A DNA stretch of 64,000 nt from Basidiobolus meristosporus CBS 931.73 (lineage: Eukaryota; Fungi; Basidiobolomycota): NCBI GenBank assembly GCA_002104905.1, contig MCFE01000424.1, positions 13,587 through 77,586 on the forward strand, in the 5' to 3' direction. A model generated the notes under the pieces. The model had not been told where the DNA came from, did not search any database, and was given only the letters and a program-made list of their open reading frames with translations. How positions within the stretch are numbered: position 1 is the first letter of the stretch; every line of letters begins with the position of its first letter. Shown here piece by piece: positions 4,101-64,000 of the stretch. The translations under genes were made by a program, and so were the position numbers.

Positions 4101-5830
4101 ATTACTTCCATCAAAAATTGCATTTGAACTTTTGAACCCAAAACACCAGCTGAATACCAGCAAAATACCATTAGAATAACAGCAGAATACCAGCAGAATA
4201 CCAGCTAAAAATCAGATGAATTCCAAGTTTGAGATTCTTCATAGGGGATATTGTTGAGAAGCAAATGCATTGCTCTCAGTGGAAAGCTTTTACTCCAACA
4301 GATACCCTCTATCTTAGGTATCTCCAGTTTCTGATTAATTCAATATTCTGGCCAATGACTTAGAGCTTGCCAACTTTGCTGCAATTGCATGCTGACTTCT
4401 GTATGTTCTCTCTGTGGCAAGATAATATTCCTAGTGTTGTTGTGGGTAATAGTAATGTGTACAAGTTATGGAGTAAGTCCCTTGGATCTCACACATTTGA
4501 CAGCAATATCTTCCAAGGTGCCCAGAAAAGCTGGCTATCTTACTGATGGCTGGGGTATATCCAATGCAGATATTAATATGCACTTTTACATGACAGCCAC
4601 CTACTGTCATCCTGCTGGAAAGCAGACAAAGCTCATCCAGCAATGGATACAGGTAGCTATCCAGGTTGGATGGTGATTTAGGCCCAGATATCAGCAAGAC
4701 TACCATCAGATTTCTTCTCTGATACTGTACAATAGACAGCAGATTAAGCTTGATGAGAATCAGTGGCCAGCAGGATTTACTGGTGGAGTACTTGTTTAAT
4801 GAGTATCCATCAAGTGCCAAGGCAAGGGCATGGTCATACATACCTTCAAAGTAGCCCTTGCTTCTTAGCAGCTTGTAATGCTTGCCATCAAATATATCTG
4901 ATATGTTTGTGCTTGATTGATACTGAGTGCAGTACTATATAGCTTAACAATATTTGTTGGACTGCATGAGCTTCTTTAGATGGGGTACTATTGGAATATA
5001 TCTGGAGTGTGAACAATGTTTTCCCCAATGGTAGTGGATTCCTGACAAGTTGGACACCTTGCAATAGTGGCATTTTCTGATGTGAATGCCATGCAACTGT
5101 TAACACATGCTGATATCAGGACAGTCTCTGGGTTATATGTTGCCAGCCACATGACAGTTTTCCTTTTATCCATGTACATGGTAGGTTGCATCCTGGGATA
5201 ATTTTGGCAAGAAGTAGTAGTAAATCATCAAACCCCTATTACTGATACTAATGGAAACATGCTACTTCTCTATCCACAACATCACATCATTCACCAGTGG
5301 ATGGATTACAAGGCCCACTTGACTCTATAAAGTATCCTTGGCATTTTTTTCCATGGGTGTTGTCTCATTGCATAATGCAATTTTGCCAGGCTTATGCAGG
5401 GTACTGTTGTTAGGGAAGGTAGGCTCACAATCTGTCAGTGAGCCTGCTTCTTCAGAGCTTGCACTCTGTATGCTATATTCAGAAGGCTGGGGTGAGCCCA
5501 AAGGTGTCACAAATTCACCTGACTCAGTTTGCACAAGGTGACAATTACAGCCTGATGCTATTATAGAAGTATCAAGTGGCCAGCAAGATATTGCTGGTAT
5601 GGTAGTGACTGGTGAATGGTCAAATATGACTTGCATGGCAAAACACTGGCTGTGATCCTTATAATACTTCCTATGCTATCTTTGTGCTTCATGGCTGAGA
5701 GGCTTGCTGCAATAGTGACATGGTCTTTTTCTCTTCTCTTTCAGTGTTGAATGAAAGAATTCTTGTCCATGGGGCAAACAGCTTGACACTCAACAATGTA
5801 ATGCTATTATATCACTTTTTTGTCAATACT
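1200..5830 (-). mobile_element. Decayed CACTA/EnSpm (CMC) transposase pseudogene, split by about 1.3 kb of non-coding DNA (~2890-4205)
   Basis: Minus-strand ORF fragments carry CACTA transposase motifs: ACVNSCMAFT..RCPTCQE (4988-5191); LALDGY..SCWPLILIKLNL..LLISGPKSPSNLDSYLYPLLDEL..GHLGRYCCQMC (4431-4841, Transposase_21/Tnp2-like); HLLLHL and GPYFTFWEFPMEW..YPNL (2073-2430, DUF4218-like). Ends are approximate; no terminal inverted repeats found. Confidence 0.8.
3092..3240. repeat. Degenerate minisatellite, about 9 copies of an AAAGGGG-type core spaced 11-25 bp apart
   Basis: ctaaaggggtgtg, ctaaaggggtcttcagac, ctaaaggggagtct, caaagggtgtctttagag, taaaggggtct, ctaaagtggactttagac, tgaaggggtgtctttagag, caaaggggcttct, tagaggggacttt read directly. 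Confidence 0.7.
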
Positions 5831-17462: not shown

Positions 17463-20400
17463 ATGTTTGGTAGTAGCGGATTTGGAAGCTCAAGTTTCGG
17501 AGGAACCTCAGGTTTTGGCCAACAAGCAAATCAAAATCAGAATCAGAATCAAGGTTCGATGTTTGGTCAGACCTCGAACACTTTCGGGGGTTCAAGCGGA
17601 GGTAGTTCGGTTGTTCGTGTTATTCTCGGCTACAAATCGTTAAATTCATCTTCGTTCTTACAGGCTTCGGACAACAATCCAACACTGGTGGTTTTGGCTC
17701 AACCTCTACCTTCGGCCAACCACAGCAACAATCTGGCTTTGGCTCCACCGGTAGATCGCGCTTAACATAATCCCGCCGATTCTAGCAACTGACTCCAACT
17801 TTTGACAGGTGCTTTCGGAGGAACATCAACCGGCTTCGGATCGCAGCCACAACAATCTGGTTTCGGCTCAGGCGGACTTTTTGGTTCCAGTAAGTTTCTC
17901 TTTTCCCACAGCTACTTTTGCCAGATCAACTCATCCGATCGATAGATACCGCTGCTCCAGCCTCAAACACAAGCTTTGGTTTTGGCAGTATGACTAATAT
18001 CTAGTTGCAGAAGTATCCAAACACCAAAACACGCATACTGAATGATATTTATTATTTTAGATTCATCGACCACCCCAGCTTTTGGCTCAACACCAAGCTC
18101 CACGGGTGTGTTTGGACAAAGTTCGAACACTGGAAATACCTTTGGCTCTACCACCACCAGTGGCGGTTTGTTTGGCAACACTAACACAAATGCCACTGGC
18201 GCATTTGGCGGAGCCACGTCTGGTTTTGGGAGTGGAATGGCCAATACTGGAAATGGAACCGCTTCACCGGCTTATAGTGTTACCCAGGAGAAGGATTCTA
18301 GCACAGGTGTGATCACCCTCTTGCAAAGTATCAGTGCCATGCCTGCCTATCGAAACTTCTCATTTGAAGAATTGAGAGTGCAGGATTATCAGCAAGGTAG
18401 GAAGACAGCCGGCCAGGCTGGAACTACTGGAGGGGCATTTGGCTCCACTAATTCTACCACGTTTGGCGGAAGTACCTTTGGAAGCAATACAAATAGTACC
18501 GGATTCGGATCTACACCTACATCCACCGGAACATCTCTCTTTGGTAATACCACCGCAAGCACAGGCTTTGGGCAGCCATCAACTGGGTTTGGCAGCACTT
18601 CAGCCCCCAGCTTTGGAGCGACTACCCCCTCAACAGGTAACTCCAGCAGCAACCTATCAAGGGTTGTTCTTGTACTAAAGTTTTGACAATACTAATAGGA
18701 TTGTTTGGCTCCAATGCCACCACCACCGGTACCTCCGCCGCCACCACCTCTCCTTTCGGCCAACCTGCCAATACGGGCGGGTTTGGAAACACCACTTCAT
18801 TCGGTCAAAACACTAACAACTCAAGCTTTGGGGCCGGAACCGGCTTTGGCAATACAGCAGCCAAACCCACATTTGGTTTTGGCTCCACCAACACCACACC
18901 AACCTCAACTTTTGGCGCAGCACCATCGACCTTCGGAAATACCAACACTAATCAAAGCACCGGCTTTGGATTTGGAGGCACATCAACCGCCACCACTACT
19001 CCAGCATTTGGAGCTACAAACACCAATACAGGCTTTGGATTTAACGCACCAGCGTCTACTGCTCCCGCCACCTCCACTCCATCATTTGGGTTTGGTAATA
19101 CCGCTGGATCCACCTTTGGTGCTGCCAAACCTGCCGCCAACAGTTTCTCGTTTGGTGCCAACACTAACACCACTGGAACCACTCTAGCAAAGCCATCCTT
19201 TGGGGGCTTTGGCAATGCTACCTCAACCACCACCACCACTCCTAGCTTGTTCGGTAATACTAATGCCTCGAGCACCCCTAGTTTATTCGGAAATACTGCC
19301 ACCTCCACTACCACTACCCCAAGTCTCTTCGGCAACACCGCCTCAACTGTAACTTCTAATCCATTTGGGGCATCCACCGCCGCATCCGGCACCACCGCTG
19401 GCAGTAGTTTGTTTGCACCAAAGCCTACCCTTGGTGGCTCCTCTCTATTCTCGAACCCATCCACTACAGGCACCGGACTGGGCTCATTTGGCACCAATAG
19501 CACAGCTGGTGGCCTTTCAACTCTTTCAAGTGCCGCTCCAAACGCCACACCTGCCAATCAAACCGGACTACAGGCCGCCATCGACAAGAATCCTTACGGA
19601 AACAACCCACTCTTCTCCTCGCTCCCAGCCACCAGTTCACCTTTGCCGGCCGCACCATTGCGAAGCAGTGTCGCCACGGAAAGCGCACCCACCAACGGGC
19701 AAGCCACACAGAAAAAGAAAACCGGATCCACCTTGCACTTCAAGTCTGCCCCACGATCAGTCGCCAAGATCAAGCTTCGTGGATTCAGTTCTCAGTCTCC
19801 CCTTAGAGCATCCACCCCCAAATCAAATACCGTATCTGAGAATGGCAACAACGACCCACTCTTGAGTCCGGATGCTTACACCCCCAACTCTAGCGTTAAG
19901 CGGTTGAACATCTCTCGCTCTAACCCCACCACTCCGCTCAAGGAGCTTCAGACGGACAAGATTCTTGGAAACCACTCGCCTCTCAGTGACCTCAACCATA
20001 CCCCCAAGAATGGAACCTTGGATCAAGTGCTCCACAGCCTGTCTACCACGCCTCAGAAGTCCCCGTCTCAACCCATTTCTTCTGCACGCTTGAACGAATC
20101 CACCCGTAGCTATGGGGACGAAAGCGTCGCGACCACCCAGCCGGACGGGGAATACTGGGTCTCTCCCTCGATAGCTGAGCTCAAGAAGATGACCCCCGGA
20201 CAACTCAAGAGAGTCGAAGATTTCGAGGTGGGACGTACCGGGTACGGAAAGGTTCGATTCCTGGAGCCAGTGGATTTGTCGGATATCGCCTCGTTGGATA
20301 GCATCCCCGGGGAGATTGTGATCTTCGAGAAGAAGGTGTGCATCGTGTTCCCAGACGAAGCCAACAAGCCGCCCCCAGGCAAGGGATTGAACGCCCCAGC

Positions 20401-20578
20401 AGTGGTCACATTGAACAACTGTTGGCCCATCGACAAGGCCACGAGACAGCCCATACGCGATATGAAACATCCCAAGTTACAGCAACATGTGAAGAAGCTG
20501 AAGGCCATGGCCGAGACTCAATTCTTAGATTTCAACTACGAGACAGCCACCTGGTCGTTCATGGTGAATCATTTCTAA
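17463..20578 (+). CDS. NUP98: Nup98/Nup116/Nup145N-type FG nucleoporin (FG repeats, GLEBS, autoproteolytic Nucleoporin2 domain), no Nup96 part
   Basis: ATG 17463 (MFGSSGFG); FG-rich exons; GLEBS motif QSISAMPAYRNFSFEELRVQDY; C-terminal YWVSPSIAEL..VEDFEVGRTGYGKVRFLEPVDL..GKGLNAPAVVTL..WSFMVNHF then TAA; about five introns. Confidence 0.95.
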
Positions 20579-44164: not shown

Positions 44165-45199
44165 ATGCAATCCTTCGACTTTGCTGCTCACCCCGTTTCT
44201 GAAACGGTAGCATTGCTTGCCGAGTATCTTACCAGTATCGCCCAGCAGAACGATTCGAATATCGTCCATCTATATGACCCAGCAACAAATGCCCCATATT
44301 GCCCTGCATACACACCTTTCCACGCACGTGGAGTCCCCTCCATCGACATTCAGGCGTATCTTACTCGCATTCTCAAGTACTGCTCTTGCTCAAACGATTG
44401 TCTCATCGCCATCATGGTGTACTTCGATCGTTTGACACGCGGGATGGGAGCCAAGGGGCCGCGCAAGTTCGCCGTGGACTCGTACAACGTCCATCGACTG
44501 GTCATTGTTGCCATCATGGTTGCCACCAAGTTCTTCTCCGACGTGTTTTATACCAATGTTAGATACTCTAAAGTTGGGGGGCTCTCTGTCTCCGAGTTGA
44601 ACTTTCTAGAAATGCAATTTTTGGCCCTTCATGAGTTCAATGTCCACATCAACCCCAGTGAGTTGCAGCGATATGCTGACGCGCTGCTGAATAACATCAG
44701 CCCAGTGGCCAGTCCTGCTCCTGCTCCTGCTCCCAAAGCTAGCGAGACTGAATTGGCCCGATTTACCGCGCCAGATACCCAGCCAGCTACGATGCAGACC
44801 TGGACGCCCCCCTCAACACCAACTCCTTCTGGTGAATCCACCCCGATCATCGTGAACTCCAACGAGTTCAAGAATGCCTGTCACTTGAGCAAAAGCTTTT
44901 CATCCGCGGATATTACTATCCCGGTGAAGAAGAGCTTTGTGGAATCCAGGATTGGGACGATTCCTCGCTCCACCCCCACAAGGGCCGACCTCACAAGCCA
45001 CTACTCGTCCTCTGTCCCGCTCAAGTCCCAGCCAAGGAGTAGTGCGCGAAGCCGAGTAGTAAGTACAGAAATGGGGAAATCTATAGATTTGTTGTTTAAG
45101 AAATCAAGTATTCAAAGTGGTAGAACATACGACTCCAATCTCAGTAACATTTTGGGTACAAATACGAGTCGGAATGTTCACGCGTTGAAGTCTTGGTAG
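44165..45199 (+). CDS. Pho80/Pcl-family (Pho85) cyclin, intronless
   Basis: FHARGVPSIDIQAYLTRILKY, VYFDRL, NVHRLVIVAIMVATKFFSDVFYTNVRYSKVGGLSVSELNFLEMQFL; P/S/T-rich C-terminal tail. Confidence 0.95.
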   Translation: MQSFDFAAHPVSETVALLAEYLTSIAQQNDSNIVHLYDPATNAPYCPAYTPFHARGVPSIDIQAYLTRILKYCSCSNDCLIAIMVYFDRLTRGMGAKGPRKFAVDSYNVHRLVIVAIMVATKFFSDVFYTNVRYSKVGGLSVSELNFLEMQFLALHEFNVHINPSELQRYADALLNNISPVASPAPAPAPKASETELARFTAPDTQPATMQTWTPPSTPTPSGESTPIIVNSNEFKNACHLSKSFSSADITIPVKKSFVESRIGTIPRSTPTRADLTSHYSSSVPLKSQPRSSARSRVVSTEMGKSIDLLFKKSSIQSGRTYDSNLSNILGTNTSRNVHALKSW

Positions 45200-49119: not shown

Positions 49120-52100
49120 TTTTGTAAATATGTGTATTTCCACCTAAATGCTCACCTAACTGAGTCACTTGGATCTTTACCTTCAAATCCTAGAGAATAC
49201 TGACCAAATTCCTTGTTGGGATTTACTTAGAATATTTTCACCAAAATACCAGGTACCCAGAACAGGATAATTCTCAAAGTTGTCCAAACAGCCCCAAACT
49301 TTGCGCACATGTTGTTGGGACCTTTCTTAACCTATTCTGTGTGTTTGTAATGCCAAGACCAGGTAAAAGTATAAATACTACTTTTACATTCAATAAATCA
49401 CTAAGTGAAAACCACATAATCTACTTGTTCTCCCAATCACATCCAATATCTCCAAGACTCTTACAGCAGGTTATGAGCCCCAAGCTGTCACTCTCTGCAA
49501 TATCTACTACTACTATTACTGGAATTTTTCCCTCTGCTGAAAAGTTGGATGGATCTAACTATCAAGTGTGGAAGGTGAAGATGAAGATGCTGCTACAAGA
49601 AAGAGGCCTTTGGGATATTGTCATGGGAGAAGAATGCCCTCCTAAAAACATGGGAGAGGAAGCCTTAAAGTACCAGAAGAACGAACAAAGTGCCTTTTGT
49701 TATAAAAATTTGTATTTCCACCTAAGTATTCACCTAACTTAGTCACTTAGATCATTACCTTCAAATCCTAGAGAATACTGACCAAATTCCTTGTTGGGAT
49801 TTACTTGGAATATTTTCACCAAAATACCAGGTACCCAGAACATGAAAATTCTAAAGTTGTCCAAACAGCCTTAAACTTTGCACACATGCTCTTGGGACCT
49901 TTCTTAACCTATTCTAGGTGTTTGTAATGCCAAGACCAGGTAAAAGTATAAATACTACTTTTACATTCAATAAATCATTAAGTGAAAACCACATAATCTA
50001 CTTGTTCTCCCAATCTCTTCCAATATCTCCAAGACTCTTACAACAGGTTATGAGCCCCAAGCTGTCACTCTCTGCAATATCTACTACTGCTATTACTGGA
50101 ATTTTTCCCTCTGCTGAAAAGTTGGGTGGATCTAACTACCAAGTGTGGAAGGTGAAGATGAAGATGCTGCTACAAGAAAGAGGCCTTTGGGATATTGTCA
50201 TGGGAGAAGAATGCCCTCCTAAAAATGTGGGAGAGGAAGCCTTGAAGTACCAGAAGAGAGAACAAAGTGCCTTTAACTGCATTTGCCTTAATGTCAAGGA
50301 CAAATTGCTAATTCAATGCTCAAGAGCAAAACGGCAAAGAATGCCTGGAAGGCATTAGAAGACACCTACCAGTCATGCTCAGCTGCCAAGAAAATGTATC
50401 TGAGACAAATATTCTTTACTACAAAGATGCTGCCAGGAGAAGAAATGAAATATCTAATTAACAGAATTACCCTGCTAGTAGATGAGATGGAATCTGTGGG
50501 TGTACCAACTGCTGATAAGGATGTGATAGTTACCATCCTGAATAGCATGACAGACAAGTTTCAGGGCCTTGTATCAGCCCTAGAGTCCAGAACTGAAGAT
50601 TTGACCTTAAATTATGTATATGGAAGGCTCCTGGATGAAGAATTAAGAAAATCAAGCGCCAAGAAGAAGGAAGAAGAAAATGCTTTAATAAGCAATGATA
50701 ACCAACAAAGGAGGTACCCAAGGCCCTACAATGGCAACAGCAACCTGTTTTGTAACTACTGCAAAAGGAAAGGACACACATCAGACCGGTGTCTCAAAAA
50801 GAGAGATTATCAGCAAGAAAAGCCTGAATATGGAAATGCTGCAACAACTGAAGATAGACTATTCATATCTGCCCTAAATATGATCACAAACAAGGATACT
50901 CAGATGTGATATATTGACTCTGGAGCTTTTCAACACTTTACACACCAAAAAGAACTTTTTACCCAATATCAAGAAATTCCAATTAAGAAGGTTTTCATGG
51001 GTGACAATAGAACACTTGATGCAGTGGGAGAAGGAACTATCCAAGTAAACCTTAGAAGCAGTGAAGGAAGGCATACACTGACCTTTGAAGAAGTACTCTA
51101 TGTACCAGAAATAGCCAAGAACCTACTCTCTGTAAGCAAGGCCACAGCAGAAGGACTCAGTTTCAGTTTTGACAATTCTGGATGCAGGATCACTGATCAA
51201 AATGGTGCCCATACTGCTTTGGGCATCAGAGATTACAATCTATACAAGTTGACTTATATTCCATCATATTTGGAAGCCAATATAAGTAACTTAAATGAAG
51301 AAACACCAATGCTTTGGCACAGGAGATTTGGACACATCAATTTGATTATTTGAGCAAAATGATCAAAGATCAGCAAATTTCTGGAGTGAAAATTGATCTC
51401 CCAGCTAATTTGGAGCACTGTGAAGCCTGCATATATGGGAAACACGCCAGACAACCGTTCAAGAGCTCTGGGTTGATCAAAGCTAAGAAAAAATTAGATC
51501 TAATTCACTCTGATCTGTGTGGACCTATGCAAAATTTATCCTTGGGTGGGATGAAGCATTTAATCACTTTTATTGATGATTATACAAGATGCACATGGGT
51601 CTACTTCATGGAGAGAAAGGAAGAAGCTCTGTCTAAGCTCAGGGAGTTTAAAGCCATGGTGGAGAGAGAAACTGGTGAAAAAATCAAGAAAATACGCTCT
51701 GACAATGGTGGAGAATATACCTCAAAACTCTTCATCCACTTCAGCAAAATTCATGGGATAAAGCAAGAGACTACTGTACCATACTCCCCACAGCAAAATG
51801 GAGTAGCAGAGCAAGCTAACAGATCAATAATTGATATGGCAAGATCTATGATCCATGATCAAAAATTATCCTATGATTTTTGGGCAGAATCAGTTGCCAC
51901 TGCTGTATATCTTAAAAATAGGAGTTATAACAGAATACTTTGTGATTCTACTCCATTTTAAGCATGGTATGGATATGGACCAAGTGCAGAACATCTAAGA
52001 ATATTTGGGTGTACAGCATATGCCAAAAAACTGCCTGGAAATCAGTAAAAATTTGAGCCAAAAAGTGAAAAATGCATATTTTTGGGCTACTGCCATGAGA

Positions 52101-55100
52101 GTAAGGCATATAGACTCAACAATACCAAAGTAAAGAAACTGATCAAGTCCAGGGATGTGTTGTTTGATGAGAATTCAAAATTTTAACAAAAAATGACATC
52201 AGATGATGACAAAAATTTGATCTCAAGTCCACCAATTGTCAGGATTGAATCAGAGCAAAACAATGAGAATTTTTTCACTCCAGAGGACTGTACAACCATG
52301 GTTCAGCCAGAATTAGTGCCCAGGAATATCCCAGAAGTAATCATTCCAGTATCAAATGCCCAGAGATCCAATCAGACAAGAAATAGCCCAAATCACTATA
52401 TCAATGAGGGTACAAACTTAACCCATGCCTATTCAGTCCATATTGATGAACCCCAGACTGTAAAAGAGGCCCTAAATAGCCCTCAGACAAAGTTTTGGAG
52501 ATTTGCAATGACTGAGGAATATCAGGCCTTGATGGAAAATCAAACTTGGGACTTAGTCAAATTACCAATCAACCAAAAATCAACTGGATGCAGATAGGTC
52601 TTCAAGACAAAATACAAGGCTGATGGTACAATTGAGAGATACAGAGCAAGACTTGTAGCCAAAGGATACTCTCAAACAAAAGGACTTGACTATACTGAGA
52701 CCTTTGCACTGGTAGCCAAGTTTAATTCCATCAGATTAATTTTGGCTATTGCAGCCAAATATAAGTTTTTTATTCATCAAATGGATGTAAAAACTGCATT
52801 TTTGAATGGCAACTTCATGAGGATGTGTATATGGACCAGCCTGATGAGTTTATTGACCAAGATAACCCCCATTTGGTCTGCAAGCTTAAAAAGTCACTAT
52901 ATGGTCTCAAACAATCACCAAGAGCCTGGAATTGCAAGATAGATTCTTATTTGTAATCCTTGAGTTTCAAAAGGAGTAATGCTGACCATAGTATATACTA
53001 TAGGCCAGATAGAGCAAATCCAGTTCTATTAGCTCTATATGTGGATGATCTTATTATAGCCACCAATTACCTAGAAACATTGGAAGAGACTAAATCCAGC
53101 CTATCTAAGGAGTTCAAGATGTCTGATATAGGAGAACTTAGTTACTACTTATGGATTAAGTACTCCATAGACAGAAACACCCAGACTATCACCCTCAATC
53201 AATCCAAGTATATTCAAGATATACTAAAGAAGTACAAAATGGAAGACTGTAAGCCAGCAGCTACCCCAATGGAGACAAGCCTTAACTTGGTCAAAATTCA
53301 CCCATATCAAGAGAGCTTCATGCCATCTGAAAGCCCTGACTTTCCTTATCAATCTATGGTTGGCTGTCTGATGTATATCATGCTTGGAACATGTCCAGAT
53401 ATCTCATATTCAGTGGGAGTTGTCAGCCAACATAATCAGAACTATGGATCTGATCATATTGCAGCAGTTAAGCGGATTTTTAGATACCTAAAAGGAACTG
53501 CTGATATTTGCTTAAGATACACTTATAAGGATTCCGAACAGGATCTTGTGGAATACTCTGATGCTGATTGGGGACAACATTTAGAAGACAGAAGATCCAC
53601 CACAGGATACACCTTTCTTTACTGTAAAGGAGCAATTTCATGGAATTTAAGAAAGCAACCAACTGTAGCACTTTCTACCACAGAGGCAGAGTACATGGCA
53701 GCCTGCAAAGCTACAAAAGAAGCAATGTGGTTAAGAAAGCTGTTTACAGATTTAGGTCTATGTCAAAAAACGCCTATTACTTTATTTCAAGGTAATCAAG
53801 GATGTATACAATTAGGTAGAAATCCAACTTTTCATGCTAGAACCAAGCACACAGATATTAGACATCATTTCATACGTGAAGCTATAGAGAATAACTTAGT
53901 TAGCTTAGTCTACTGTCCTACAGAAGAAATGATTGCAGACATATTTACCAAACCATTAGCTAGAGACAAGTTTGAATATCTTAAGTCAAAATTAGGACTA
54001 GTCAGTATGAGCATTTAGCTGAGCAGGAGTGTTGTAAAAGTTTGTATTTCCACCTAAATATTCACCTAACTTAGTCACTTAGATCATCACCTTCAAATCC
54101 TAGAGAATACTGACCAAATTCCTTGTTGGGATTTACTTAGAATATTTTCACCAAAATACCAGGTACCCAGAACATGAAAATTCTCAAAGTTGTCCAAACA
54201 ACCCCAAACTTTGCACACATGTTCTTGGGACCTTCCTTAGCCTATTCTACGTGTTTGTGATGCCAAGACCAGGTAAAAGTATAAATACTACTTTTACATT
54301 CAATAAATCATTAAGTGAAAACCACATAATCTACTTGTTCTCCCAATCACTTCCAATATCTCCAAGACTCTTACAACACCTTGAGCTGCATTTGCCTTAA
54401 TGTTAAAGACAAATTGCTAATTCAATGCTCAAGAGCAAAAAACGGCAAAGAATGCCTGGAAGGCATTAGAAGACACCTACCAGTCATGTTCAGCTGCTAA
54501 GAAGATGTATCTGAGACAAAAATTCTTTACTACAAAGATGCTGCCAGGAGAAGAAATGAAAAATCTAAGTAACAGAATTGCCCTGCTGGTAGATGAGATG
54601 GAATCTGTGGGTGTACCAACTACTTATGAGGATGTGATAGTTGCCATCCTGAATAGCCTGAAAGACAAGTTTCAGGGCCTTGTATCAGCCCTAGAGTCCA
54701 GAACTGAAGATTTGACCTTAAATTATGTATATGGAAGGCTTCTAGATGAAGAATTAAGAAAATCAAGTGCTAATAAGAAGTAAGAAGAAAATGCTTTAAT
54801 AAACAATGATAACCAACAAAGGAGGTACCCAAGGCCCTACAATGGCAACAGCAACCTGTTTTGTAACTACTGCAAAAGGAAAGGACACACATCAGACTGG
54901 TGTCTCAAAAAGAAAGACAATCATCAAAAGAAGCCTGAATATGGAAATGCTGCAACAACTGAAGATAGACTATTCATATCTGCACTAAATATGACCACAA
55001 ACAAGGATTCTCAGACGTGGTATATAGACTCTGGAGCTTCTCAACACTTTACACACCAAAAAGAACTTTTTACCCAATACCAAGAAATTCCAATTAAGAA

Positions 55101-58100
55101 GGTTTTCATGGGTGACAATAGTACACTTGATGCAGCGGGAGAAGGAACTATCCAAGTAAACCTTAGAAGCAGTGAAGGAAGCCATACACTGACCTTTGAA
55201 GAAGTACTCTATATACCAGAAATAGCCAAGAACCTACTCTCTGTAAGCAAGGCCACAACAGAAGGACTTGACTTCAGCTTTGACAATTCTGGATGCAGGA
55301 TCACTGATCAAAATGGTGCCCATATTGATTCAGGCATCAGAGATCACAATCTATACAAGTTGACATATATTTCATCATATTTGGAAGCCAATATAAGTAA
55401 CTTAAATGAAGAAACACCAATGCTTTGGCACAGGAGATTTGAGCGCATCAATTTTGATTATTTGAGCAAAATGATCAAAGATCAGCTAATATCTGGAGTC
55501 AAAACTGATCCCCCAGCTAATTTGGAGTACTGTGAACCTGCATATATGGGAAACATGCCAGACAACCGTTCAAGAGCTCTGGGTTGATCAAAGCTGAGAA
55601 AAAATTAGATCTAATTCACTCTGATCTGTGTGGACCTATGCAAAATTTATCCTTGGGTGGGATGAAGCATTTAATCACTTTTATTGATGATTATACAAGA
55701 TACACATGGGTCTACTTCATGGAGAGAAAGGAAGAAGCTCTGTCTAAGCTCAGGGAGTTTAAAGCCATGGTGGAGAGAGAAACTGGTGAAAAAATCAAGA
55801 AAATACGCTCCGACAATGGTGGAGAATATACCTCAAAACTCTTCATCCACTTCAGCAAAATTCATGGGATAAAGCAAGAGACTACTGTACCATACTCCCC
55901 ACAGCAAAATGGAGTAGCAGAACAAGCTAACAGATCAATAATTGATATGGCAAGATCTATGATCTAGGATCAAAAATTATCCTATGATTTTTGGGTGGAA
56001 TCAGTTGTCACTGCTGTAGATCCTAAAAACAGGAGTTATAACAGAATACTTTGTAATTCTACTTCATTTGAAGCATGGTATGGATATGGACCAAGTGCAG
56101 AACATCTAAGAATATTTGGGTGTACAGCATATGCCAAAAAACTGCCCGGAAATCAGTCAAAATTTGAGCCAAAAAGTGTAAAGTGCATATTTTTGGGCTA
56201 CTGCAATGAGAGTAAGGCATACAGACTCTACAATACTAAAGCAAAGAAACTGATCAAGTCTGGGTATGTGTTGTTTGATGAAATTCAAAATTTTTACAAA
56301 AAATGACATCAGATGATGACAAAAATTTGATCTCAAGTCCACCAATTGTCAGGATTGAATCAGAGTAAAACAATGAGAATTTTTTATTCCAGAGGACTCT
56401 ACAACCATGGTTTGGCCAGAATCAGTGCCCAGGAATATCCCAGAAGTGATCATTCCAGTATCAAATGCCCAGAGATCCAATCAGACAAGAAATAGCCCAA
56501 ATCACTATATCAATGAGGGTTCAAACTTAGCCTATGCCTATTCAGTCCATATTGATGAGCCCCAGACTGTAAAAGAGGTCCTAAATAGCCCTCAGACAAA
56601 GTTTTGGAGATTTGCAATGACTGAGGAATATCAGGCCCTGATGGAATATCAAACTTGGGACTTGATCAAATTACCAATCAACCAAAAATCAATTGGATGC
56701 AGATGGGTCTTCAAGACAAAATACAAGGCTGATGGTACAATTGAGAGATACAAAGCAAGACTTGTAGCCAAAAGATACTCTCAAACAAAAGGACTTGACT
56801 ATACTGAGACCTTTGCACTGGTAGCCAAGTTTAATTCCATCAGATTAATATTGGCTATTGCAGCCAAATATAAGTTTTTTATTCATCAAGTGGATGTAAA
56901 AACTGCATTTTTGAATGGCAAACTTCATGAGGATGTGTATATGGACCAGCCTGATGGGTTTGTTGACCAAGATAACCCCCATTTGGTCTGCAAGCTTAAA
57001 AAGTCACTATATGGTCTCAAACAATCACCAAGAGTCTGGAGTTGCAAGATGGATTCATATTTGGAATCTTTGAGTTTCAAAAGGAGTAATGCTGGCCATA
57101 GTATATAATATAAGCCAGATAGAGCAAATCCAGTTCTATTAGCTCTATATGTGGATGATCTTATTATAGCCACCAATAACCTAGAAACATTGGAAGAGAC
57201 TAAATCCAGCCTATCTAAGGAGTTCAAGATGTCCAATCTATGAGAACTTAATTACTACTTAGGGATTAAGTTCTCCATAGACAGAAGTACTCAGACTATC
57301 ACCCTAAGTCAATCCAAGCATATTCAAGATATACTAAAGTAGTACCAAATGGAAGACTGTAAACCGGCAGCTACCCCGATGGAAACAAACCTTAACATGG
57401 TCAAAACTCAACCAAATCAAGAGAGCTTGGTGCCATCTGAAAGCCCTGACTTTCCTTATCAGTCTATGGTTGGCTGTCTAATGTATATCATGCTTGGAAC
57501 ACGTCCTGATATCTCATATTCAGAGGGATTTGTCAGCCAACATAATCAGAACTACGGATCTGATCACATTGCAGCAGTTAAGCGGATTTTTAGATACCTA
57601 AAAGGAACTGCTGATATCTGCTTAAGATACACTTATAAGGATTCCGAGCAGGATCTTGTGGAATACTCTGATGCTGATTGGGGACAAAATTTAGAAGACA
57701 GAAGATCCACCACAGGATACACCTTTCTTTACTGTAAAGGAGCAATTTCATGGAATTCAAGAAAGCAGCCAACCATAGCACTTTCCATCACAGAGGCAGA
57801 GTATATGGCAGCCTGTGAAGCTAAAAAAGAAGCAATGTAGTTAAGATAACTTTTTACAGATTTAGGCCTATGTTAAAAAACGCCTATTACTTTATTTCAA
57901 GATAATCAAGGATGTATATAATTAGGTAGAAATCCAATTTTTCATGCTAGAACCAAGCACACAGATATTAGACATCATTTCACACATGAAGCTATAGAGA
58001 GTAACCTAGATAGCTTAGCTTACTATCCTACAGATGAAATGATTGCAGACATATTTACCAAACCATTAGCTAGAGACAAGTTTGAATATCTTAAGTCAAA

Positions 58101-58488
58101 ATTAGGACTAGTCAGTATGAGCATTTAGCTGAGCAGGAGTGTTGTAAAAGTTTGTATTTCCACCTAAATATTCACCTAACTTAGTCACTTAGATCATCAC
58201 CTTCAAATCCTAGAGAATACTGACCAAACTCCTTGTTGGGATATACTTCGAATATTTTGACCAAAATACCAGGTACCCAGAACAGGATAATTCTCAAAGT
58301 TGTCCAAACAGCCCCAAGCTTTGCACACATGTTCTTGGGACCTTCCTTAATCTATTCTACATGTTTGTATTGCCAAGACCAGATAAAAGTATAAATACTA
58401 CTTTTACATTCAATAAATCATTAAGTGAAAACCACATAATCTACTTGTTCTCCCAATCACTTCCAATATCTCCAAGACTCTTACAACA
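49120..58488 (+). mobile_element. Outer Ty1/copia element (~4.68 kb without the insert), decayed; LTRs 49120-49468 and 58140-58488
   Basis: Paired 349-bp LTRs share diagnostic CAGAACAGGATAATTC; PBS GGTTATGAGCCC 49469-80; PPT GAGCAGGAG before the 3' LTR; gag-PR-IN-RT-RH order ([58 protein letters not shown]); stops and frameshifts; flanks GTCCT/GTCTT. Confidence 0.95.
49698..54378 (+). mobile_element. Inner Ty1/copia element (4681 bp) of the same family inserted in the gag of the outer copy; LTRs 49698-50045 and 54030-54378
   Basis: 5-bp TSD CCTTT (49693-97) / CCTTG (54379-83); outer gag resumes in register; LTR pair shares CAGAACATGAAAATTC; PBS 50046-57; PPT 54021-29; full gag-pol with several stops and frameshifts. 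Confidence 0.96.
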
Positions 58489-58716
58489 GTCTTGAGGAAG
58501 CAGGAACCGACTTTCTGACAGCTTCAGAGTAGGAAGAGTAATCAGGAGCAGATGATTCTTGGGGAGTCTTGTTGGCAGGAAGAGTTGACACAGGGACAAT
58601 AGATTCTTGCAGATCAGAGAAGGCAGAAAATAGCAATTGAACTAGTTTCTTGAGTAGAGCATTTTCAGCTTCAACAAGTGCAAGCCTTTCCTCAAGGACA
58701 GATATCTGAAGGGAAT
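58489..58716 (-). mobile_element. Fragment resembling non-LTR ORF1 (coiled coil, linker, SYSEAVRK)
   Basis: Open minus frame HSLQISVLEERLALVEAENALLKKLVQLL..PDYSSYSEAVRKSVPASSR; its stop comes from the adjoining LTR; same strand as the LINE array. Family membership is not provable in this window. Confidence 0.4.
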
Positions 58717-58782
58717 GGGTTAGGGGGAGGAAAGTCACCAAGTGGTGAAATCTTTATTTACTTATGACAAGTATCTAAAGAA
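58717..58782 (-). mobile_element. 66-bp 3'-end stub of a related but distinct non-LTR family
   Basis: Minus strand ..AAGTAAATAAAGATTTCACCACTTGGTGACTTTCCTCCCCCTAACCC; shares the terminal ~45 nt with the main family but differs in the hairpin loop and upstream. Confidence 0.7.
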
Positions 58783-59126
58783 GGGTTAGGGGGGAGACAG
58801 TCACCAACAGGTGAAATCTTTATTTCAGTTGAAACAAAGAAGCCAGCGCTACTGTTGTAGCTTTGATACAAGAGTGTGTAGCTGAGGGGAACTTGTAGGT
58901 AAGTTAATAGGAAGTGATGATAGTTCTTCAGCGCTCAAGACACTGTTCAGTGGGAAGGGGGGTAGCAAGAGAGGTAAGAATGACTTGTGAACAACATTAA
59001 TGAGGGGAATGTGATAAGGATTGATATTCATCATAAAGGGAATGTGCTGCTGCAGATATTGCTGCCAAAGGTCTGTCAAGTACTTCAGGTAGGCCAGCTT
59101 GGGTTTTTCTGAGTGCAGAATATAGT
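58783..59126 (-). mobile_element. 5'-truncated LINE copy (344 bp)
   Basis: Near-identical to the 3' 340 bp of the longer copies; starts GGGTTAGGGGGG on +; 4 extra bases (TAGT) at its 5' junction. Confidence 0.95.
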
Positions 59127-61404
59127 GGGTTAGGGGGGAGACAGTCACCAACAGGTGAAATCTTTATTTCAGTTGAAACAAAGAAGCCAGCGCTACTGTT
59201 GTAGCTTTGATACAAGAGTGTGTAGCTGAGGGGAATTTGTAGGTAAGTTAATAAGAAGTGATGATAGTTCTTCAGTGCTCAAGACACTGTTCAATGGGAA
59301 GGGGGGTAGCAAGAGAGGTAAGAATGACTTGTGAACAACATTAATGAGGGGAATGTGATAAGGATTGATATTCATCATAAAGGGAGTGTGCTGCTGCAGA
59401 TATTGCTGCCAAAGGTCTGTCAAGTACTTCAGGTAGGCCAGCTTGGGTTTTTCTGACTGCAGAATAAATTCAGCAAACTTCTTGACTTCAGGATCTCCAA
59501 GTATAGTTCTCCAGCAGGAGCCAGGTGTTGTGTGGTGTGTTCTCTTCCAGGCCTTAATCAGTGGGTTATTGCAGTTGTGAAGTCTGAGGTATAATCTGGT
59601 TCTAAGGTAGAGAAGTCTGATCTTATAGGGCATAAACCCAAAAGCACCAAGAATGGCATGTCTGTAGGGGCATTCAGGCAAATGAGGCACCAAGGAGGTA
59701 ATGCACCATACTGCAAACTTGTCAAGCTTAGTGCAGTCTCTAGAAGTAAGAGAGAGAAGTGGTAAGCCAAATTCCAGGACAGGGAAGACAAACTGCTTGA
59801 GTAGAAGAAGGCAGCTGGGAGCTGAAGTTGTAGGAGGAGTAACAGCCAGTAGCTTGTGGAGTGCCTGTCTTGCCAGGATAATTCTCTTCTTCAGGTGTGC
59901 TCCAGAGTCTAGTCCAGTAGGAAGGAAAGGAAAGCCAAGATATGTAGCAGAAACCTGAGCAGGTAGAGTGGAGTTCTCCAAGTTGATGGGAGAGCCCAAA
60001 GGTACTGTCTTTGCAATGGAAAGCTGGAGATTATTCTTCTGCAGATACTGGTGGATGGTCTGGGAGTCTTGTTGCACATTGGAGGAGGATATTCTGATGT
60101 CATCAGCAAAGAGAGTAACCAGGCAGTCAGCTGAGAGTCTTGGGAAATCATTCAGGAAGATGGCAAACAGTATAGGACCAAGCACAGAGCCTTGAACCAC
60201 TCCATTAGGAACTGAGAATACAGCTGATTGCTCACTTGGGTGCAGAATTCTTGCTTGTTGATCCAGAAACAGAGACCTGACAAGGAGGGTGAGAGAGGTA
60301 CTGGAGAAGCATTGCAACTTGGACCAAAGCAGATTTCTGTCAACTGAATCAAAGGCCTTAGTAATATCAAACAGAACTGAGGGATACTTGCACTGGAGAG
60401 AGTGATCTTGGCTAAGTATGACTGCATATTCCAAGGAGAGGCCAGGAACAAAGCCAAGCTGTGCAGGATGAAACTTGAGGGAGTCAGAGTAGAGCTCCTG
60501 AGTAAGCAGAAGCTCAAACACCTTTCTGCAGGTGGGCAGCAGAGATATTGGCCTGTAGGAGCTCGGATCCAGGTGCTTTCCTTTACCCTTGTACAGTGGC
60601 AGAACATTTGCAAAGGACCATTCCTCAGGAGTAGAAAGCTGGGCTGAGCATTGCTGAAACAGTGGAAGCAGAAGTGCAGACATGGCCTTGGTACTAGTCT
60701 TCAGAGGCTCATAGGAGATTGTGTCCACACCTGGGGCAGTAGAGTTGGGAAGCCTCTTGAGCACATTATGGATTCTCCTTTGATCAAGTGCAAGTGGGAT
60801 GGGCAGAGTCTTGAAGGCAGGATGAAAGCCAGGAGTTGAGTACTGCTTTGTAGAGAAGAAGATGTTAGCCAGCTGTTCTGTTGAAGGTGACTTCCTGGAA
60901 GAGGGCCTCATTGCCCTGTAGAGTCTTGATACTGTTCTTGTTATAGAGTTGGAAGATTGCAGAGGCAAGGAACTCATAATATGATCCCAGAGCTGCGTAT
61001 GCAGAGTGTGGTGAATTGCCTTGGAGTGGTGTATTGCTGTCAGGAGGAGTTTCTCTGTTTTTGGGTTAGGGAAACTCAGGTAGCTTTGTTGCAGGGCTGA
61101 AACAATGGATTCCCATTTTCTTGAGGTAACAGCAGTAGTCTTGCATGGCAGTGAGAGGGAGGCAGACACCAGAATCAGATGCTTCACAAAGAGCCAGGCA
61201 TAGTTGAGATTGTCTGGCAGAGAAAGTAGCAAACTGGCAAGCTTCAAGTAGTTCCCAAAGTCTTTCTTCTGATTCTTGGTAGCTTTGTGGGTGAGCACAG
61301 CAAGTTTTGGCAGCTTCTTCTTCACAACTGGTTGCATAGAAAGGGACCAGGCTGGGTGGTCAGAGGCTCTCAAGGATCCTAGCTCAGCTCCAGAGAATTG
61401 CTTA
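59127..61404 (-). mobile_element. 5'-truncated LINE copy (2278 bp) with intact RT frame, most of the endonuclease lost
   Basis: Open frame 59193-61404: SDH, STAPGVDTI, LYKGKG..YRPISLLPT, QLGFVPG, FDITKAFDSV, GVVQGSVLGPILF, LFADD, TYLGF; about 99% identical to the distal copy by eye. Confidence 0.96.
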
Positions 61405-61426
61405 GGGTTAGGGTTTAGGGTTAGGG
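61402..61426 (+). repeat. Interstitial telomeric tract TTAGGG TTAGGG TTTAGGG TTAGGG between two LINE copies
   Basis: Read directly: c-ttaggg-ttaggg-tttaggg-ttaggg-ggg-agacag. Confidence 0.95.
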
Positions 61427-64000
61427 GGGAGACAGTCACCAACAGGTGAAATCTTTATTTCAGTTGAAACAAAGAAGCCAGCGCTACTGTTGTAGCTTTG
61501 ATACAAGAGTGTGTAGCTGAGGGGAATTTGTAGGTAAGCTAATAAGAAGTGATGATAGTTCTTCAGTGCTCAAGACACTGTTCAGTGGGAAGGGGGGTAG
61601 CAAGAGAGGTAAGAATGACTTGTGAACAACATTAATGAGGGGAATGTGATAAGGATTGATATTCATCATAAAGGGAGTGTGCTGCTGCAGATATTGCTGC
61701 CAAAGGTCTGTCAAGTACTTCAGGTAGGCCAGCTTGGGTTTTTCTGACTGCAGAATAAAGTGAGCAAACTTCTTGACTTCAGGATCTCCAAGTATAGTTC
61801 TCCAGCAGGAGCCAGGTGTTGTGTGGTGTGTTCTCTTCCAGGCCTTAATCAGTGGGTTGTTGCAGTGGTGAAGTCTGAGATATAATCTGGTTCTAAGGTA
61901 GAGAAGTCTGATCTTATAGGGCATAAACCCAAAAGCACCAAGAATAGCATGTCTGTAGGGGCATTCAGGCAAATGAGGCACCAAGGAGGTAATGCACCAT
62001 ACTGCAAACTTGTCAAGCTTAGTGCAGTCTCTAGAAGTAAGAGAGAGAAGTGGTAAGCCAAATTCCAGGACAGGGAAGACAAACTGCTTGAGTAGAAGAA
62101 GGCAGCTGGGAGCTGAAGTTGTAGGAGGAGTAACAGCCAGTAGCTTGTGGAGTGCCTGTCTTGCCAGGATAATTCTCTTCTTCAGGTGTGCTCCAGAGTC
62201 TAGTCCAGTAGGAAGGAAAGGAAAGCCAAGATATGTAGCAGAAACCTGAGCAGGTAGAGTGGAGTTCTCCAAGTTGATGGGAGAGCCCAAAGGTACTGTC
62301 TTTGCAATGGAAAGCTGGAGATTATTCTTCTGCAGATACTGGTGGATGGTCTGGGAGTCTTGTTGCACATTGGAGGAGGATATTCTGATGTCATCAGCAA
62401 AGAGAGTAACCAGGCAGTCAGCTGAGAGTCTTGGGAAATCATTCAGGAAGATGGCAAACAGTATAGGACCAAGCACAGAGCCTTGAACCACTCCATTAGG
62501 AACTGAGAACACTGGTGATTGCTCACTTGGGTGCAGAATTCTTGCTTGTGGATCCAGAAACAGGGACCTGACAAGGAGGGTGAGAGAGGTACTGGAGAAG
62601 CATTGCAACTTGGACCAAAGCAGATTTCTGTCAACTGAATCAAAGGCCTTAGTAATATCAAACAGAACTGAGGGATACTTGCACTGGAGAGAGTGATCTT
62701 GGCTAAGTATGACTGCATATTCCAAGGAGAGGCCAGGAACAAAGCCAAACTGTGCAGGATGAAACTTGAGGGAGTCAGAGTAGAGCTCCTGAGCAAGCAG
62801 AAGCTCAAACACCTTTCTGCAGGTGGGCAGCAGAGATATTGGCCTGTAGGAGCTAGGATCCAGGTGCTTTCCTTTACCCTTGTACAGTGGCAGAACATTT
62901 GCAAAGGACCATTCCTCAGGAGTAGAAAGCTGGGCTGAGCATTGCTGAAACAGTGGAAGCAGAAGTGCAGACATGGCCTTGGTACTAGTCTTCAGAAGCT
63001 CATAAGAGATTGTGTCCACACCTGGAGCAGTAGAGTTGGGAAGCCTCTTGAGCACATTATGGATTCTCCTTTGATCAAGTGCAAGTGGGATGGGCAGAGT
63101 CTTGAAGTCAGGATGAAAGCCAGGAGTTGAGTACTGCTTTGTAGAGAAGAAGATGTTAGCCAGCTGTTCTGTTGAAGGTAACTTCCTGGAAGAGGGCCTC
63201 ATTGCCCTGTAGAGTCTTGATACTGTTCTTGTTATAGAGTTGGAAGATTGCAGAGGCAAGGAACTCATAATATGATCCCAGAGCTGAGTATGCAGAGTGT
63301 GGTGAATTGCCTTGGAGTGGTGTATTGCTGTCAGGAGGAGTTTCTCTGTTTTTGGGTTAGGGAAACTCAGGTAGCTTTGTTGCAGGGCTGAAACAATGGA
63401 TTCCCATTTTCTTGAGGTAACAGCAGTAGTCTTGCATGGCAGTGAGAGGGAGGCAGACACCAGAATCAGATGCTTCACAAAGAGCCAGGCATAGTTGAGA
63501 TCATCTGGCAGAGAAAGTAGCAAACTGGCAAGCTTCAAGTAGTTCCCAAAGTCTTTCTTCTGATTCTTGGTAGCTTTGTGGGTGAGCACAGTAAGTTTTG
63601 GCAGCTTCTTCTTCACAACTGGTTGCATAGAAAGGGACCAGGCTGGGTGGTCAGAGGCTCTCAAGGATCCTAGCTCAGCTCCAGAGAATTGCTTAACTTC
63701 ATCCACAAAGTAGAGGGCAGCAGCAGAAGGGCAGATCCAGTCAACACATCTTTTCTCAGATTGAGCACCTAGTGCTAGCAGATGGCTTTCTCTCAGGAAG
63801 TTCAGTAGGAATGTAGACCTTGGCTTCATTCTTGCAGTCAGAGTAGTCTTGTTCTCAGGATGGGGAATGTTGAGATCTCCAAGCAAGATAATAGGTGTTG
63901 ATATAGATTGCTGGTATTGCTGAACATTCTGGCATATAACTTGCACTTCCTGAAGGGGGAGACTTGGAGGCAGATAGCAGAGCACCAGACTAATAGTTGG
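61418..64000 (-). mobile_element. Distal APE-RT non-LTR retrotransposon copy, running past the window edge
   Basis: Same 3' end as the other units; ~66-nt 3' UTR with AATAAA (61454-59) and TCACC-N4-GGTGA hairpin (61436-49). Confidence 0.96.
61484..64000 (-). CDS. LINE ORF2: apurinic-like endonuclease (partial in window) plus reverse transcriptase, uninterrupted
   Basis: Frame open to the window edge (PTISLVLCYLPP); APE motifs LCYLPP, IILLGDLN, VDWI, SDH; RT motifs as in the proximal copy; no C-terminal CCHC knuckle or RNase H recognised; TAG at 61484-86. Confidence 0.95.
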   Translation of the reverse strand, partial: PTISLVLCYLPPSLPLQEVQVICQNVQQYQQSISTPIILLGDLNIPHPENKTTLTARMKPRSTFLLNFLRESHLLALGAQSEKRCVDWICPSAAALYFVDEVKQFSGAELGSLRASDHPAWSLSMQPVVKKKLPKLTVLTHKATKNQKKDFGNYLKLASLLLSLPDDLNYAWLFVKHLILVSASLSLPCKTTAVTSRKWESIVSALQQSYLSFPNPKTEKLLLTAIHHSKAIHHTLHTQLWDHIMSSLPLQSSNSITRTVSRLYRAMRPSSRKLPSTEQLANIFFSTKQYSTPGFHPDFKTLPIPLALDQRRIHNVLKRLPNSTAPGVDTISYELLKTSTKAMSALLLPLFQQCSAQLSTPEEWSFANVLPLYKGKGKHLDPSSYRPISLLPTCRKVFELLLAQELYSDSLKFHPAQFGFVPGLSLEYAVILSQDHSLQCKYPSVLFDITKAFDSVDRNLLWSKLQCFSSTSLTLLVRSLFLDPQARILHPSEQSPVFSVPNGVVQGSVLGPILFAIFLNDFPRLSADCLVTLFADDIRISSSNVQQDSQTIHQYLQKNNLQLSIAKTVPLGSPINLENSTLPAQVSATYLGFPFLPTGLDSGAHLKKRIILARQALHKLLAVTPPTTSAPSCLLLLKQFVFPVLEFGLPLLSLTSRDCTKLDKFAVWCITSLVPHLPECPYRHAILGAFGFMPYKIRLLYLRTRLYLRLHHCNNPLIKAWKRTHHTTPGSCWRTILGDPEVKKFAHFILQSEKPKLAYLKYLTDLWQQYLQQHTPFMMNINPYHIPLINVVHKSFLPLLLPPFPLNSVLSTEELSSLLISLPTNSPQLHTLVSKLQQ

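Follow-up and report, generated by a model that had tools for sequence, protein, structure and literature searches.

What kind of structure closes a contig of Basidiobolus meristosporus CBS 931.73 with one truncated retroelement copy after another, all pointing the same way, and how was it built? The window that we analysed, a stretch of 64,000 nt, reaches the end of contig C729 (77,586 bp): base 64000 is the final base of the contig, and the assembly ends inside the last unit of the array. The initial annotation of this DNA, made from the sequence alone, had described the array as telomere-associated long interspersed nuclear elements (LINEs) with an apurinic/apyrimidinic endonuclease (APE). 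Our analysis makes it probable that these units represent the inner portion of an array at a chromosome end, built by a telomere-dedicated, APE-type retrotransposon without long terminal repeats (non-LTR retrotransposon).

The array (58717–64000) comprises four retroelement units of the same orientation, which are coded on the minus strand and measure 66, 344, 2278 and more than 2583 bp. Four units of one orientation had been proposed before (with >2580 bp for the last one); orientation and sizes hold, while the 66 bp unit belongs to a second element, family B, and not to family A like the other three. A BLAST search with a natural full-length copy of family A (locus L031) located these three at 58785–59122, 59129–61404 and 61420–64000, in the same orientation, with 97.6–99.3% identity, and each beginning at the 3′ end of the element. 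The same search revealed no further family A copies or telomere repeats in the rest of the 64 kb window. The 66 bp unit is 100% identical to units of loci L014, L017, L026 and L030, and its likeness to family A is limited to the first ~42 nt (88%), which correspond to a 3′ module described below. The 344 bp unit is 5′-truncated at reference position ~348, followed by a filler of 4 nt (TAGT). An open frame (59193–61442) with a complete reverse transcriptase (RT) domain (59928–60566; RVT_1, E 1.3e-24) is found in the 2278 bp unit, and the TTA at its truncation point is common to the unit and the telomere-like tract that follows. The outermost unit holds the 3′ untranslated region (UTR), the C-terminal region of open reading frame 2 (ORF2), the RT (62219–62857; RVT_1, E 5.9e-25) and endonuclease residues ~85–215 (63743–64000; Exo_endo_phos_2, E 0.002); missing from it are the first ~84 codons of ORF2, all of ORF1 and the 5′ UTR. 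Two copies with open RT frames (RVT_1, E ~1e-24) and an APE in the distal one had been expected, and both are present, the endonuclease with its C-terminal two thirds.

Each unit opens on the plus strand with GGGTTAGGG, at 58717, 58783, 59127 and 61418, exactly as previously noted. The string occurs seven times on the plus strand of the window compared to 0.33 expected occurrences, and none of 100 shuffled sequences got to seven. Five of the sites (58717, 58783, 59127, 61405 and 61418) are unit starts or part of the junction tract; the remaining two (61063–61071 and 63354–63362) represent one ORF2-internal site in two copies. This internal site is present in every family A copy, and since none of ~25 truncation points lies there, it is not a hotspot for insertion. 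The proposal that the units are joined by GGGTTAGGG is right in that the string stands at the junctions; its length varies, however, and part of it may be carried by the element or by the primer. Likewise, the (TTAGGG)n tract suggested for one junction exists (61402–61426), although it is imperfect and contains TTTAGGG.

To place the array in the genome, the assembly (89,489,060 bp in 1366 contigs) was searched for family A, and 40 of 873 first-look candidates were scored. The scored candidates represent at least 40 long copies with ~99% identity. On each of the 12 contigs whose length is known, the copy is located 0–2229 bp from the contig end, with its 5′ end outward, and six contigs (L005, L007, L014, L022, L025 and L031) terminate in (TTAGGG)n of 136–240 bp, equivalent to 23–40 repeats. 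Five of these six tracts sit directly on family A, either on a copy truncated at reference positions 2656–3263 or precisely on a full-length 5′ end; L014 differs in that a unit of ~780 bp from another family separates the family A copy from the terminal tract. The same architecture is repeated on at least 30 separately assembled contigs. These data substantiate the association with telomeres, with 12 of 12 copies within 2.3 kb of an end, and the polarity assigned to the array: the G-strand is on the plus strand, the sense strand of the element is continuous with the C-strand, 3′ ends face inward and cDNA extends the G-strand. The chromosome end had also been placed to the right of the window. 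There contig C729 stops at 64000 without a visible telomere, and support for this part comes from the six other contigs, which carry both the element and a telomere. The opposite end of C729 shows neither telomere nor array, and the contig is therefore not demonstrated to be a whole chromosome. Fresh (TTAGGG)n tracts, added de novo to truncated coding sequence, imply a telomerase that is presumably active. Contigs of 40–260 kb end in telomeres, and chromosome ends may be very numerous in this genome.

The coding capacity of the element was deduced from the complete family A copy, which is ~4.57 kb long and lies on contig C1074 (L031), immediately beneath the terminal telomere. Family A copies have no long terminal repeats (LTRs) and are variably 5′-truncated with a common 3′ end, as is characteristic of non-LTR retrotransposons. 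The order is ORF1, an in-frame UGA and ORF2, which encodes the AP-endonuclease followed by a LINE RT. The RT of the full-length copy gives a clear match (RVT_1 of Pfam, E 2.6e-25), carries the FADD motif, and has L1 ORF2p as its best solved relative (E 6e-13). Residues 1–215 of ORF2 constitute the endonuclease: its motifs N, Y, GDxN, D and SDH line up with those of 24 other LINE endonucleases, and the AlphaFold model (pLDDT 86) is matched by Foldseek with probability 1.0 to ExoA, APE1, L1 endonuclease (EN) and TRAS1 EN. These results confirm the classification as an APE-type LINE, even though the Pfam endonuclease match of the full-length ORF2, taken alone, is under threshold. The metal-binding Glu is replaced by Asp in all family members and relatives. 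Values of dN/dS were 0.12 for the endonuclease region versus 0.08 for the RT, with dS near saturation; as judged from these ratios, the endonuclease is under purifying selection. A motif scan of ORF2 detected neither the motif of restriction-enzyme-like (REL) endonucleases (CCHC ... RHD/N ... E ... K/RPD, C-terminal to the RT; PMC12857005) nor a C-terminal zinc knuckle, and the Pfam scan of the element proteins reported no RNase H family. An open ORF2 is found in 24 of 28 copies; the family is therefore young and probably active.

ORF1 did not match any Pfam family and has no CCHC knuckles. It has an N-terminal CxxC...CxC motif resembling a Zn ribbon and a domain of beta-alpha-beta-beta-alpha-beta topology, with a conserved helical tail on the C-terminal side of this RRM-like domain. 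The structural model as a whole is of low confidence, and matches of the domain to RRM folds, obtained from this low-confidence model, are moderate (Z 6.6–8.8); a helix of 64 residues, compatible with a coiled coil, was modelled with good confidence. ORF1 and ORF2 are in the same frame and separated by a single UGA (L031 3324–3341, minus strand). The context GC(C/A) UGA CU(A/C/U) is kept in all six diverged members (L031, L034, L036, L040, L041 and L043), and the endonuclease begins five codons past the UGA without an AUG. The kept context together with the missing AUG suggests stop-codon readthrough, which looks programmed and would result in an ORF1-ORF2 fusion. Readthrough is not known as a usual route of ORF2 expression in LINEs.

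Two observations concern the 5′ region. The leader of family A contains a (CATC)n-like run that is kept in relatives, and in L031 (~4917–4930) the 5′ UTR has an inserted stretch of ~21 nt that includes two CCCTAA repeats and is absent in the relatives L036 and L040. We considered that a separate short interspersed nuclear element (SINE) might account for the outermost ~150 bp of the complete copy, and rejected this as the relatives carry the leader contiguous with the 5′ UTR.

At the 3′ end, the last ~45 nt of the RNA consist of AAUAAAGAUU, a hairpin, a pyrimidine stretch, at least four C residues and UAA(CCC...). In the family A module of the window the hairpin has 5 bp (UCACC-loop-GGUGA) and is followed by C5-7 and UAA(CCC); its generalised form is (U/A)CACC, a loop of 4–6 nt and GGUG(A/G). 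Folding predicted the hairpin in all four families tried (z −1.5 to −3.9). Covariation could not be demonstrated for this hairpin, since the stem is invariant and variation is confined to the loop. The module is common to at least five families of the genome that are wholly different upstream, and other families form the left flanks at L006, L007, L014, L015, L018, L019, L022, L023 and L028. A further array family has a different 3′ end and begins on the plus strand with CTAGTGCTTTATTGGG after telomere repeats; loci with other families include L014 (4356–5137) and L016 (4783 onward).

Relatives from other public samples, with 48–80% identity in ORF2, have the same 3′ module including the telomere-complementary tail, and are likewise stacked head-to-tail with short CCCTAA joints. 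Among 1.84 billion representative proteins, five members of the family were found. The nearest LINEs outside of it show 30–36% identity in the RT core and stem from arthropods, Parasitella (Mucorales) and metagenomes; none of them is telomeric, and their tails are poly(A) or of other kinds. The ESM Atlas yielded 'APE+RT LINE', and cluster names pointed to arthropod and Parasitella 'hypothetical proteins'. A link to TRAS/SART was dropped, as the best-scoring arthropod (Tribolium, aphid), fungal and metagenomic relatives carry no telomere repeats in their vicinity and terminate in poly(A) or a different tail.

The positions of the array features in the window are compiled in Table 1. At its proximal edge the array is preceded by a family C fragment, which matches L021, L029, L007, L028 and L013 at 80–93%; in those loci the sequence extends in both directions.

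Table 1. Features of the array in the 64,000 nt window (positions refer to the first base of the window)
Feature	Position	Strand	Remarks
Family C fragment (further array-associated element)	58489..58716	-	Truncated on both sides; proximal array edge
Family B 3′-terminal unit, 66 nt	58717..58782	-	3′ module as in family A, other sequence beyond
Family A unit, 344 bp	58783..59126	-	BLAST 97.6% to L031; tandem repeat finder period 344
Family A unit, 2278 bp	59127..61404	-	BLAST 98.8%; 5′-truncated within ORF2
Imperfect telomere-repeat tract	61402..61426	+	TTAGGG TTAGGG TTTAGGG TTAGGG, merging into the G-run of the next unit
Outermost family A unit, cut by the contig end	61418..64000	-	BLAST 99.3% to L031
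3′ module copies	61418..61459, 58783..58824, 59127..59168; family B version 58717..58763	-	

To learn how the units became joined, we compared 44 family A 3′ junctions. All 44 have the same order on the plus strand: upstream DNA, 1–24 nt in telomere phase, a run of 4–11 G residues (mostly 5–7) and the element. The constant part is TTA followed by G5-7, and the leading GGG varies across the genome. Perfect inner tracts do not exceed 24 nt (four repeats) at any of the 44 junctions, degenerate tracts reach up to ~45 nt, and the inner tracts, of 0–4 repeats, differ in phase from junction to junction. Poly(A) was not found at any of these junctions. Many units adjoin a truncated older unit with merely 1–4 nt of common sequence, and the A-to-A junctions show a mean microhomology of 2.2 nt compared to 0.74 nt expected (P = 2e-4). 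Most junctions are unique, with differing truncation points. Among the copies examined, no interrupted copy resumes beyond an inserted one, and additions are therefore terminal rather than nested.

Two loci are informative with regard to priming. The unit in L027 is devoid of its last ~172 nt and begins inside the 3′ UTR, at a G6 run that is preceded by GGTTAGGGTTA. The template reads AA at this place, so the TTA is not template-derived, and a genuine telomeric end evidently paired with the internal C6 of the element RNA. In L014 a 5′-leader copy of 102 nt follows a complete 5′ end with an overlap of 2 nt, which looks like a template jump. Many further joints between a truncation point and a 3′ end, with fillers of 1–30 nt, were present in contigs from sequencing runs X1–X4. 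These runs belong to one sample and study, and their short contigs cannot span the array or long tracts; X1 and X2 are the main holders of the element and may derive from the same sample as the assembly.

We consider it probable that the units were added to chromosome termini by priming from a G-ending 3′-OH on the C-run or tail of the RNA, with subsequent re-capping by telomerase. The RNA would end in the conserved module with AAUAAA, the short hairpin, a C5-7 run and UAA(CCC...). The G-rich 3′-OH of the chromosome G-strand would pair with the C-run or the telomere-complementary tail over a few nucleotides, ORF2p would extend the paired 3′-OH, and the first-strand cDNA would become the new G-strand, which telomerase would then provide with a fresh tract. 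Additions of this kind would be terminal and non-nested and would take place at ends carrying zero to about four telomere repeats; alternatively, within the same model, units could be concatenated by template jumps between RNAs. The priming 3′-OH could be a naturally eroded end or a nick set by the endonuclease of the element, and if a nick were set close to the end and the distal stub were lost, the products would be the same. Four features speak for priming by base pairing: a G-run of variable length, nucleotides in telomere phase, microhomology at the joints and the copy primed at the internal C6.

The most serious competitor is insertion as known from TRAS/SART, in which the endonuclease nicks a defined position in an intact (TTAGGG)n duplex, reverse transcription starts at the nick and telomere flanks are kept on both sides. 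An APE with all catalytic positions and purifying selection (dN/dS 0.12), the TRAS orientation with CCCTAA on the sense strand, and the telomere phase at every normal junction would all be accounted for in this way. The tract lengths would not: random nicks in terminal tracts of 23–40 repeats should leave ~15 repeats on average, while all 44 junctions retain 0–4 (or degenerate tracts of up to ~45 nt), and many units directly follow a truncated older one, with 1–4 nt in common. The missing poly(A) tail, the missing CCHC knuckles in ORF1 and the copy primed at an internal C-run in L027 speak against it as well, and we regard this mechanism as rather unlikely. Since inner tracts are nearly absent and terminal tracts are long, random nicking in intact telomeres and overhang priming of a full-length telomere both fit poorly. 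Either one would leave many inner repeats, and therefore addition to almost repeat-free ends (or template jumping) is the most economical explanation. It is improbable that the element has no specificity for ends or targets and that the subtelomeres are a safe haven in which arrays arise mainly by recombination, break-induced replication and segmental duplication. Identical junctions with identical flanks on different contigs and the presence of other subtelomeric repeats (the copia-like element and the family C fragment) would be expected in such a haven, but not the single orientation of the units towards the end, a start that is always exactly at the 3′ module, mostly unique junctions with different truncation points or the significant microhomology to the telomere phase. 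Nor would it explain why the telomere-complementary tail is kept across families and samples, while the nearest LINEs outside the family have poly(A). Mis-joining of repeats at a contig end is conceivable in principle, as C729 stops within the last unit and the high repetition permits local collapse or expansion of the unit number. With the architecture found on at least 30 separately assembled contigs, with joints visible in contigs of the sequencing runs, and with the same structure in independent samples of related organisms, an assembly artefact is extremely improbable.

Several points weigh against the proposed model. Some junctions are common to several contigs, namely a B-to-A junction (window and L007) and one present in L006, L026 and L030. 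As these junctions indicate, array segments are also spread by recombination or duplication, and part of the array structure evidently goes back to these processes and not to new insertion. The conserved, selected endonuclease argues for a nick at some step, and its purifying selection is no less compatible with a step that depends on the endonuclease than with pure priming from ends. The element was present in no RNA run, so that the 3′ end of the RNA is deduced from DNA, and the TTA and further repeats may therefore be derived from the template or from the primer. One copy (C781:56708–59290, minus strand) was not placed relative to a contig end, and the scored copies represent 40 of the 873 candidates.

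Terminal addition and re-capping might even amount to a second system of telomere maintenance, which we regard as possible though doubtful: ORF2p could align any G-ending terminus on the C-run of its own RNA, comparable to the role of the template in telomerase, and heal ends without repeats, in a fungus whose assembly suggests very many ends. Equally tentative is the notion that the families with the common 3′ module would make up a guild of cooperating or parasitising members, similar to that of Drosophila but existing beside an active telomerase.

How does the element relate to known telomeric retrotransposons, which have been reviewed for SART/TRAS, GilM/GilT, Zepp1, MoTeR1, Tx1-1_ACar, Athena and the Drosophila elements (PMC10088271)? 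TRAS1 and SART1 of Bombyx mori (R1 clade, with relatives in Tribolium and aphids; PMC10088271) are likewise telomere-confined, two-ORF APE-type LINEs, which have one orientation and coexist with telomerase-type repeats. The fold of the TRAS1 EN matches that of the Basidiobolus endonuclease (1wdu, TM 0.62–0.69), although the two share 15–16% identity, and L1 EN and APE1 are equally close. TRAS and SART differ in inserting at a fixed position in long tracts with repeats on both sides, whereas the Basidiobolus element shows nearly absent inner tracts and microhomology junctions; it has no poly(A) but a tail complementary to the G-strand, and its ORF1 has a predicted coiled coil plus RRM-like fold instead of CCHC knuckles. 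With HeT-A, TART and TAHRE of Drosophila (Jockey clade) it shares terminal head-to-tail arrays of variably 5′-truncated copies with 3′ ends toward the centromere, several families in one niche, and an APE kept despite terminal addition. Drosophila, however, has no telomerase and its junctions carry poly(A), while the Basidiobolus arrays are capped by TTAGGG and their junctions consist of telomere-phase nucleotides and a G-run.

Fungal hosts and stacked, truncated telomeric units with very short TTAGGG stretches in between are also found for MoTeR1/2 (Pyricularia), FoTeR (Fusarium) and Cnl1 (Cryptococcus). MoTeR1, FoTeR and Cnl1 are grouped with site-specific elements of the CRE/SLACS type (PMC12857005, PMC7367193), and their REL endonuclease domain has been aligned (PMC12857005). 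MoTeR1 and FoTeR differ from the Basidiobolus element by this REL endonuclease, which in FoTeR is C-terminal after the RT, in contrast to an N-terminal APE and a separate ORF1. The view of the initial annotation that known fungal telomere LINEs are not APE-type agrees with the described ones being REL-type (PMC12857005).

A telomere-complementary 3′ end is the sole trait common to our element and the Penelope-like elements Athena and Coprina, whose RT comes without an endonuclease, as opposed to a LINE RT with conserved APE. Their 3′ reverse-complement telomere repeats are reportedly thought to pair with the G-overhang and lead to terminal addition (Gladyshev and Arkhipova 2007). Endonuclease-independent L1 insertion is said to occur at dysfunctional telomeres (Morrish et al. 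2007); there too a LINE RT extends an uncapped chromosome end, but as an accident of a generalist in mutant cells, whereas in Basidiobolus this appears to be normal and is the only observed mode of a specialised family. The element is thus similar to HeT-A/TART in terminal stacking, to Athena in its tail and to TRAS in enzyme type and orientation, and it lacks the defining features of each known family that could be tested.

Full-text searches yielded no account of retrotransposons at the telomeres of Basidiobolus or of any other zygomycete. As the fungal telomere LINEs MoTeR, FoTeR and Cnl1 carry a REL endonuclease, a telomere-dedicated APE-type LINE is a kind not yet described in fungi. Telomere-specialised retrotransposons are otherwise found in insects, Giardia, Chlorella, rotifers, the anole lizard and a few Dikarya fungi; with the Basidiobolus element, the telomere habit would have arisen independently in a fungus that diverged early, and an APE-type LINE would have been its source. 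The priming mechanism is directly testable by means of the telomere-complementary tail, the nearly repeat-free inner junctions and the copy primed at an internal C-run. Moreover, retrotransposon arrays and telomerase-made tracts coexist on the same chromosome ends, and such coexistence is the intermediate usually invoked for the loss of telomerase in Drosophila.

Directly inside the array, the window contains remains of a copia-type LTR retrotransposon (50316–58344; RVT_2) with strong A-over-T skew, and an 86% identical copia-type copy is present in L033 (364–3705) at the opposite end of contig C729. Ordinary host genes were found 15–45 kb from the array, namely a Nup98/96-type nucleoporin (18683–20578) and a Pho80-like cyclin (44165–45199), so that the gene-bearing part of the contig extends near the chromosome end. 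The cyclin has 71% identity to a Basidiobolus ranarum protein, and the next matches are likewise from Basidiobolus.

Finally, the transposons are extremely depleted of CpG. The full-length element (L031 496–5075) contains 10 CpG in 4580 nt, an observed/expected ratio of 0.044, with GpC being normal (1.16), and seven of the ten are located in the first 170 nt of the 5′ UTR. The ratio is 0.088 for the copia-like region (50000–58480), 0.60 for window positions 1–50000 and 0.75 for the genic part. In contigs of the sequencing runs the remaining CpGs of the element are polymorphic as TG/CA (59191/59192 and 61482/61483). The depletion together with this polymorphism suggests long-standing cytosine methylation of transposons.

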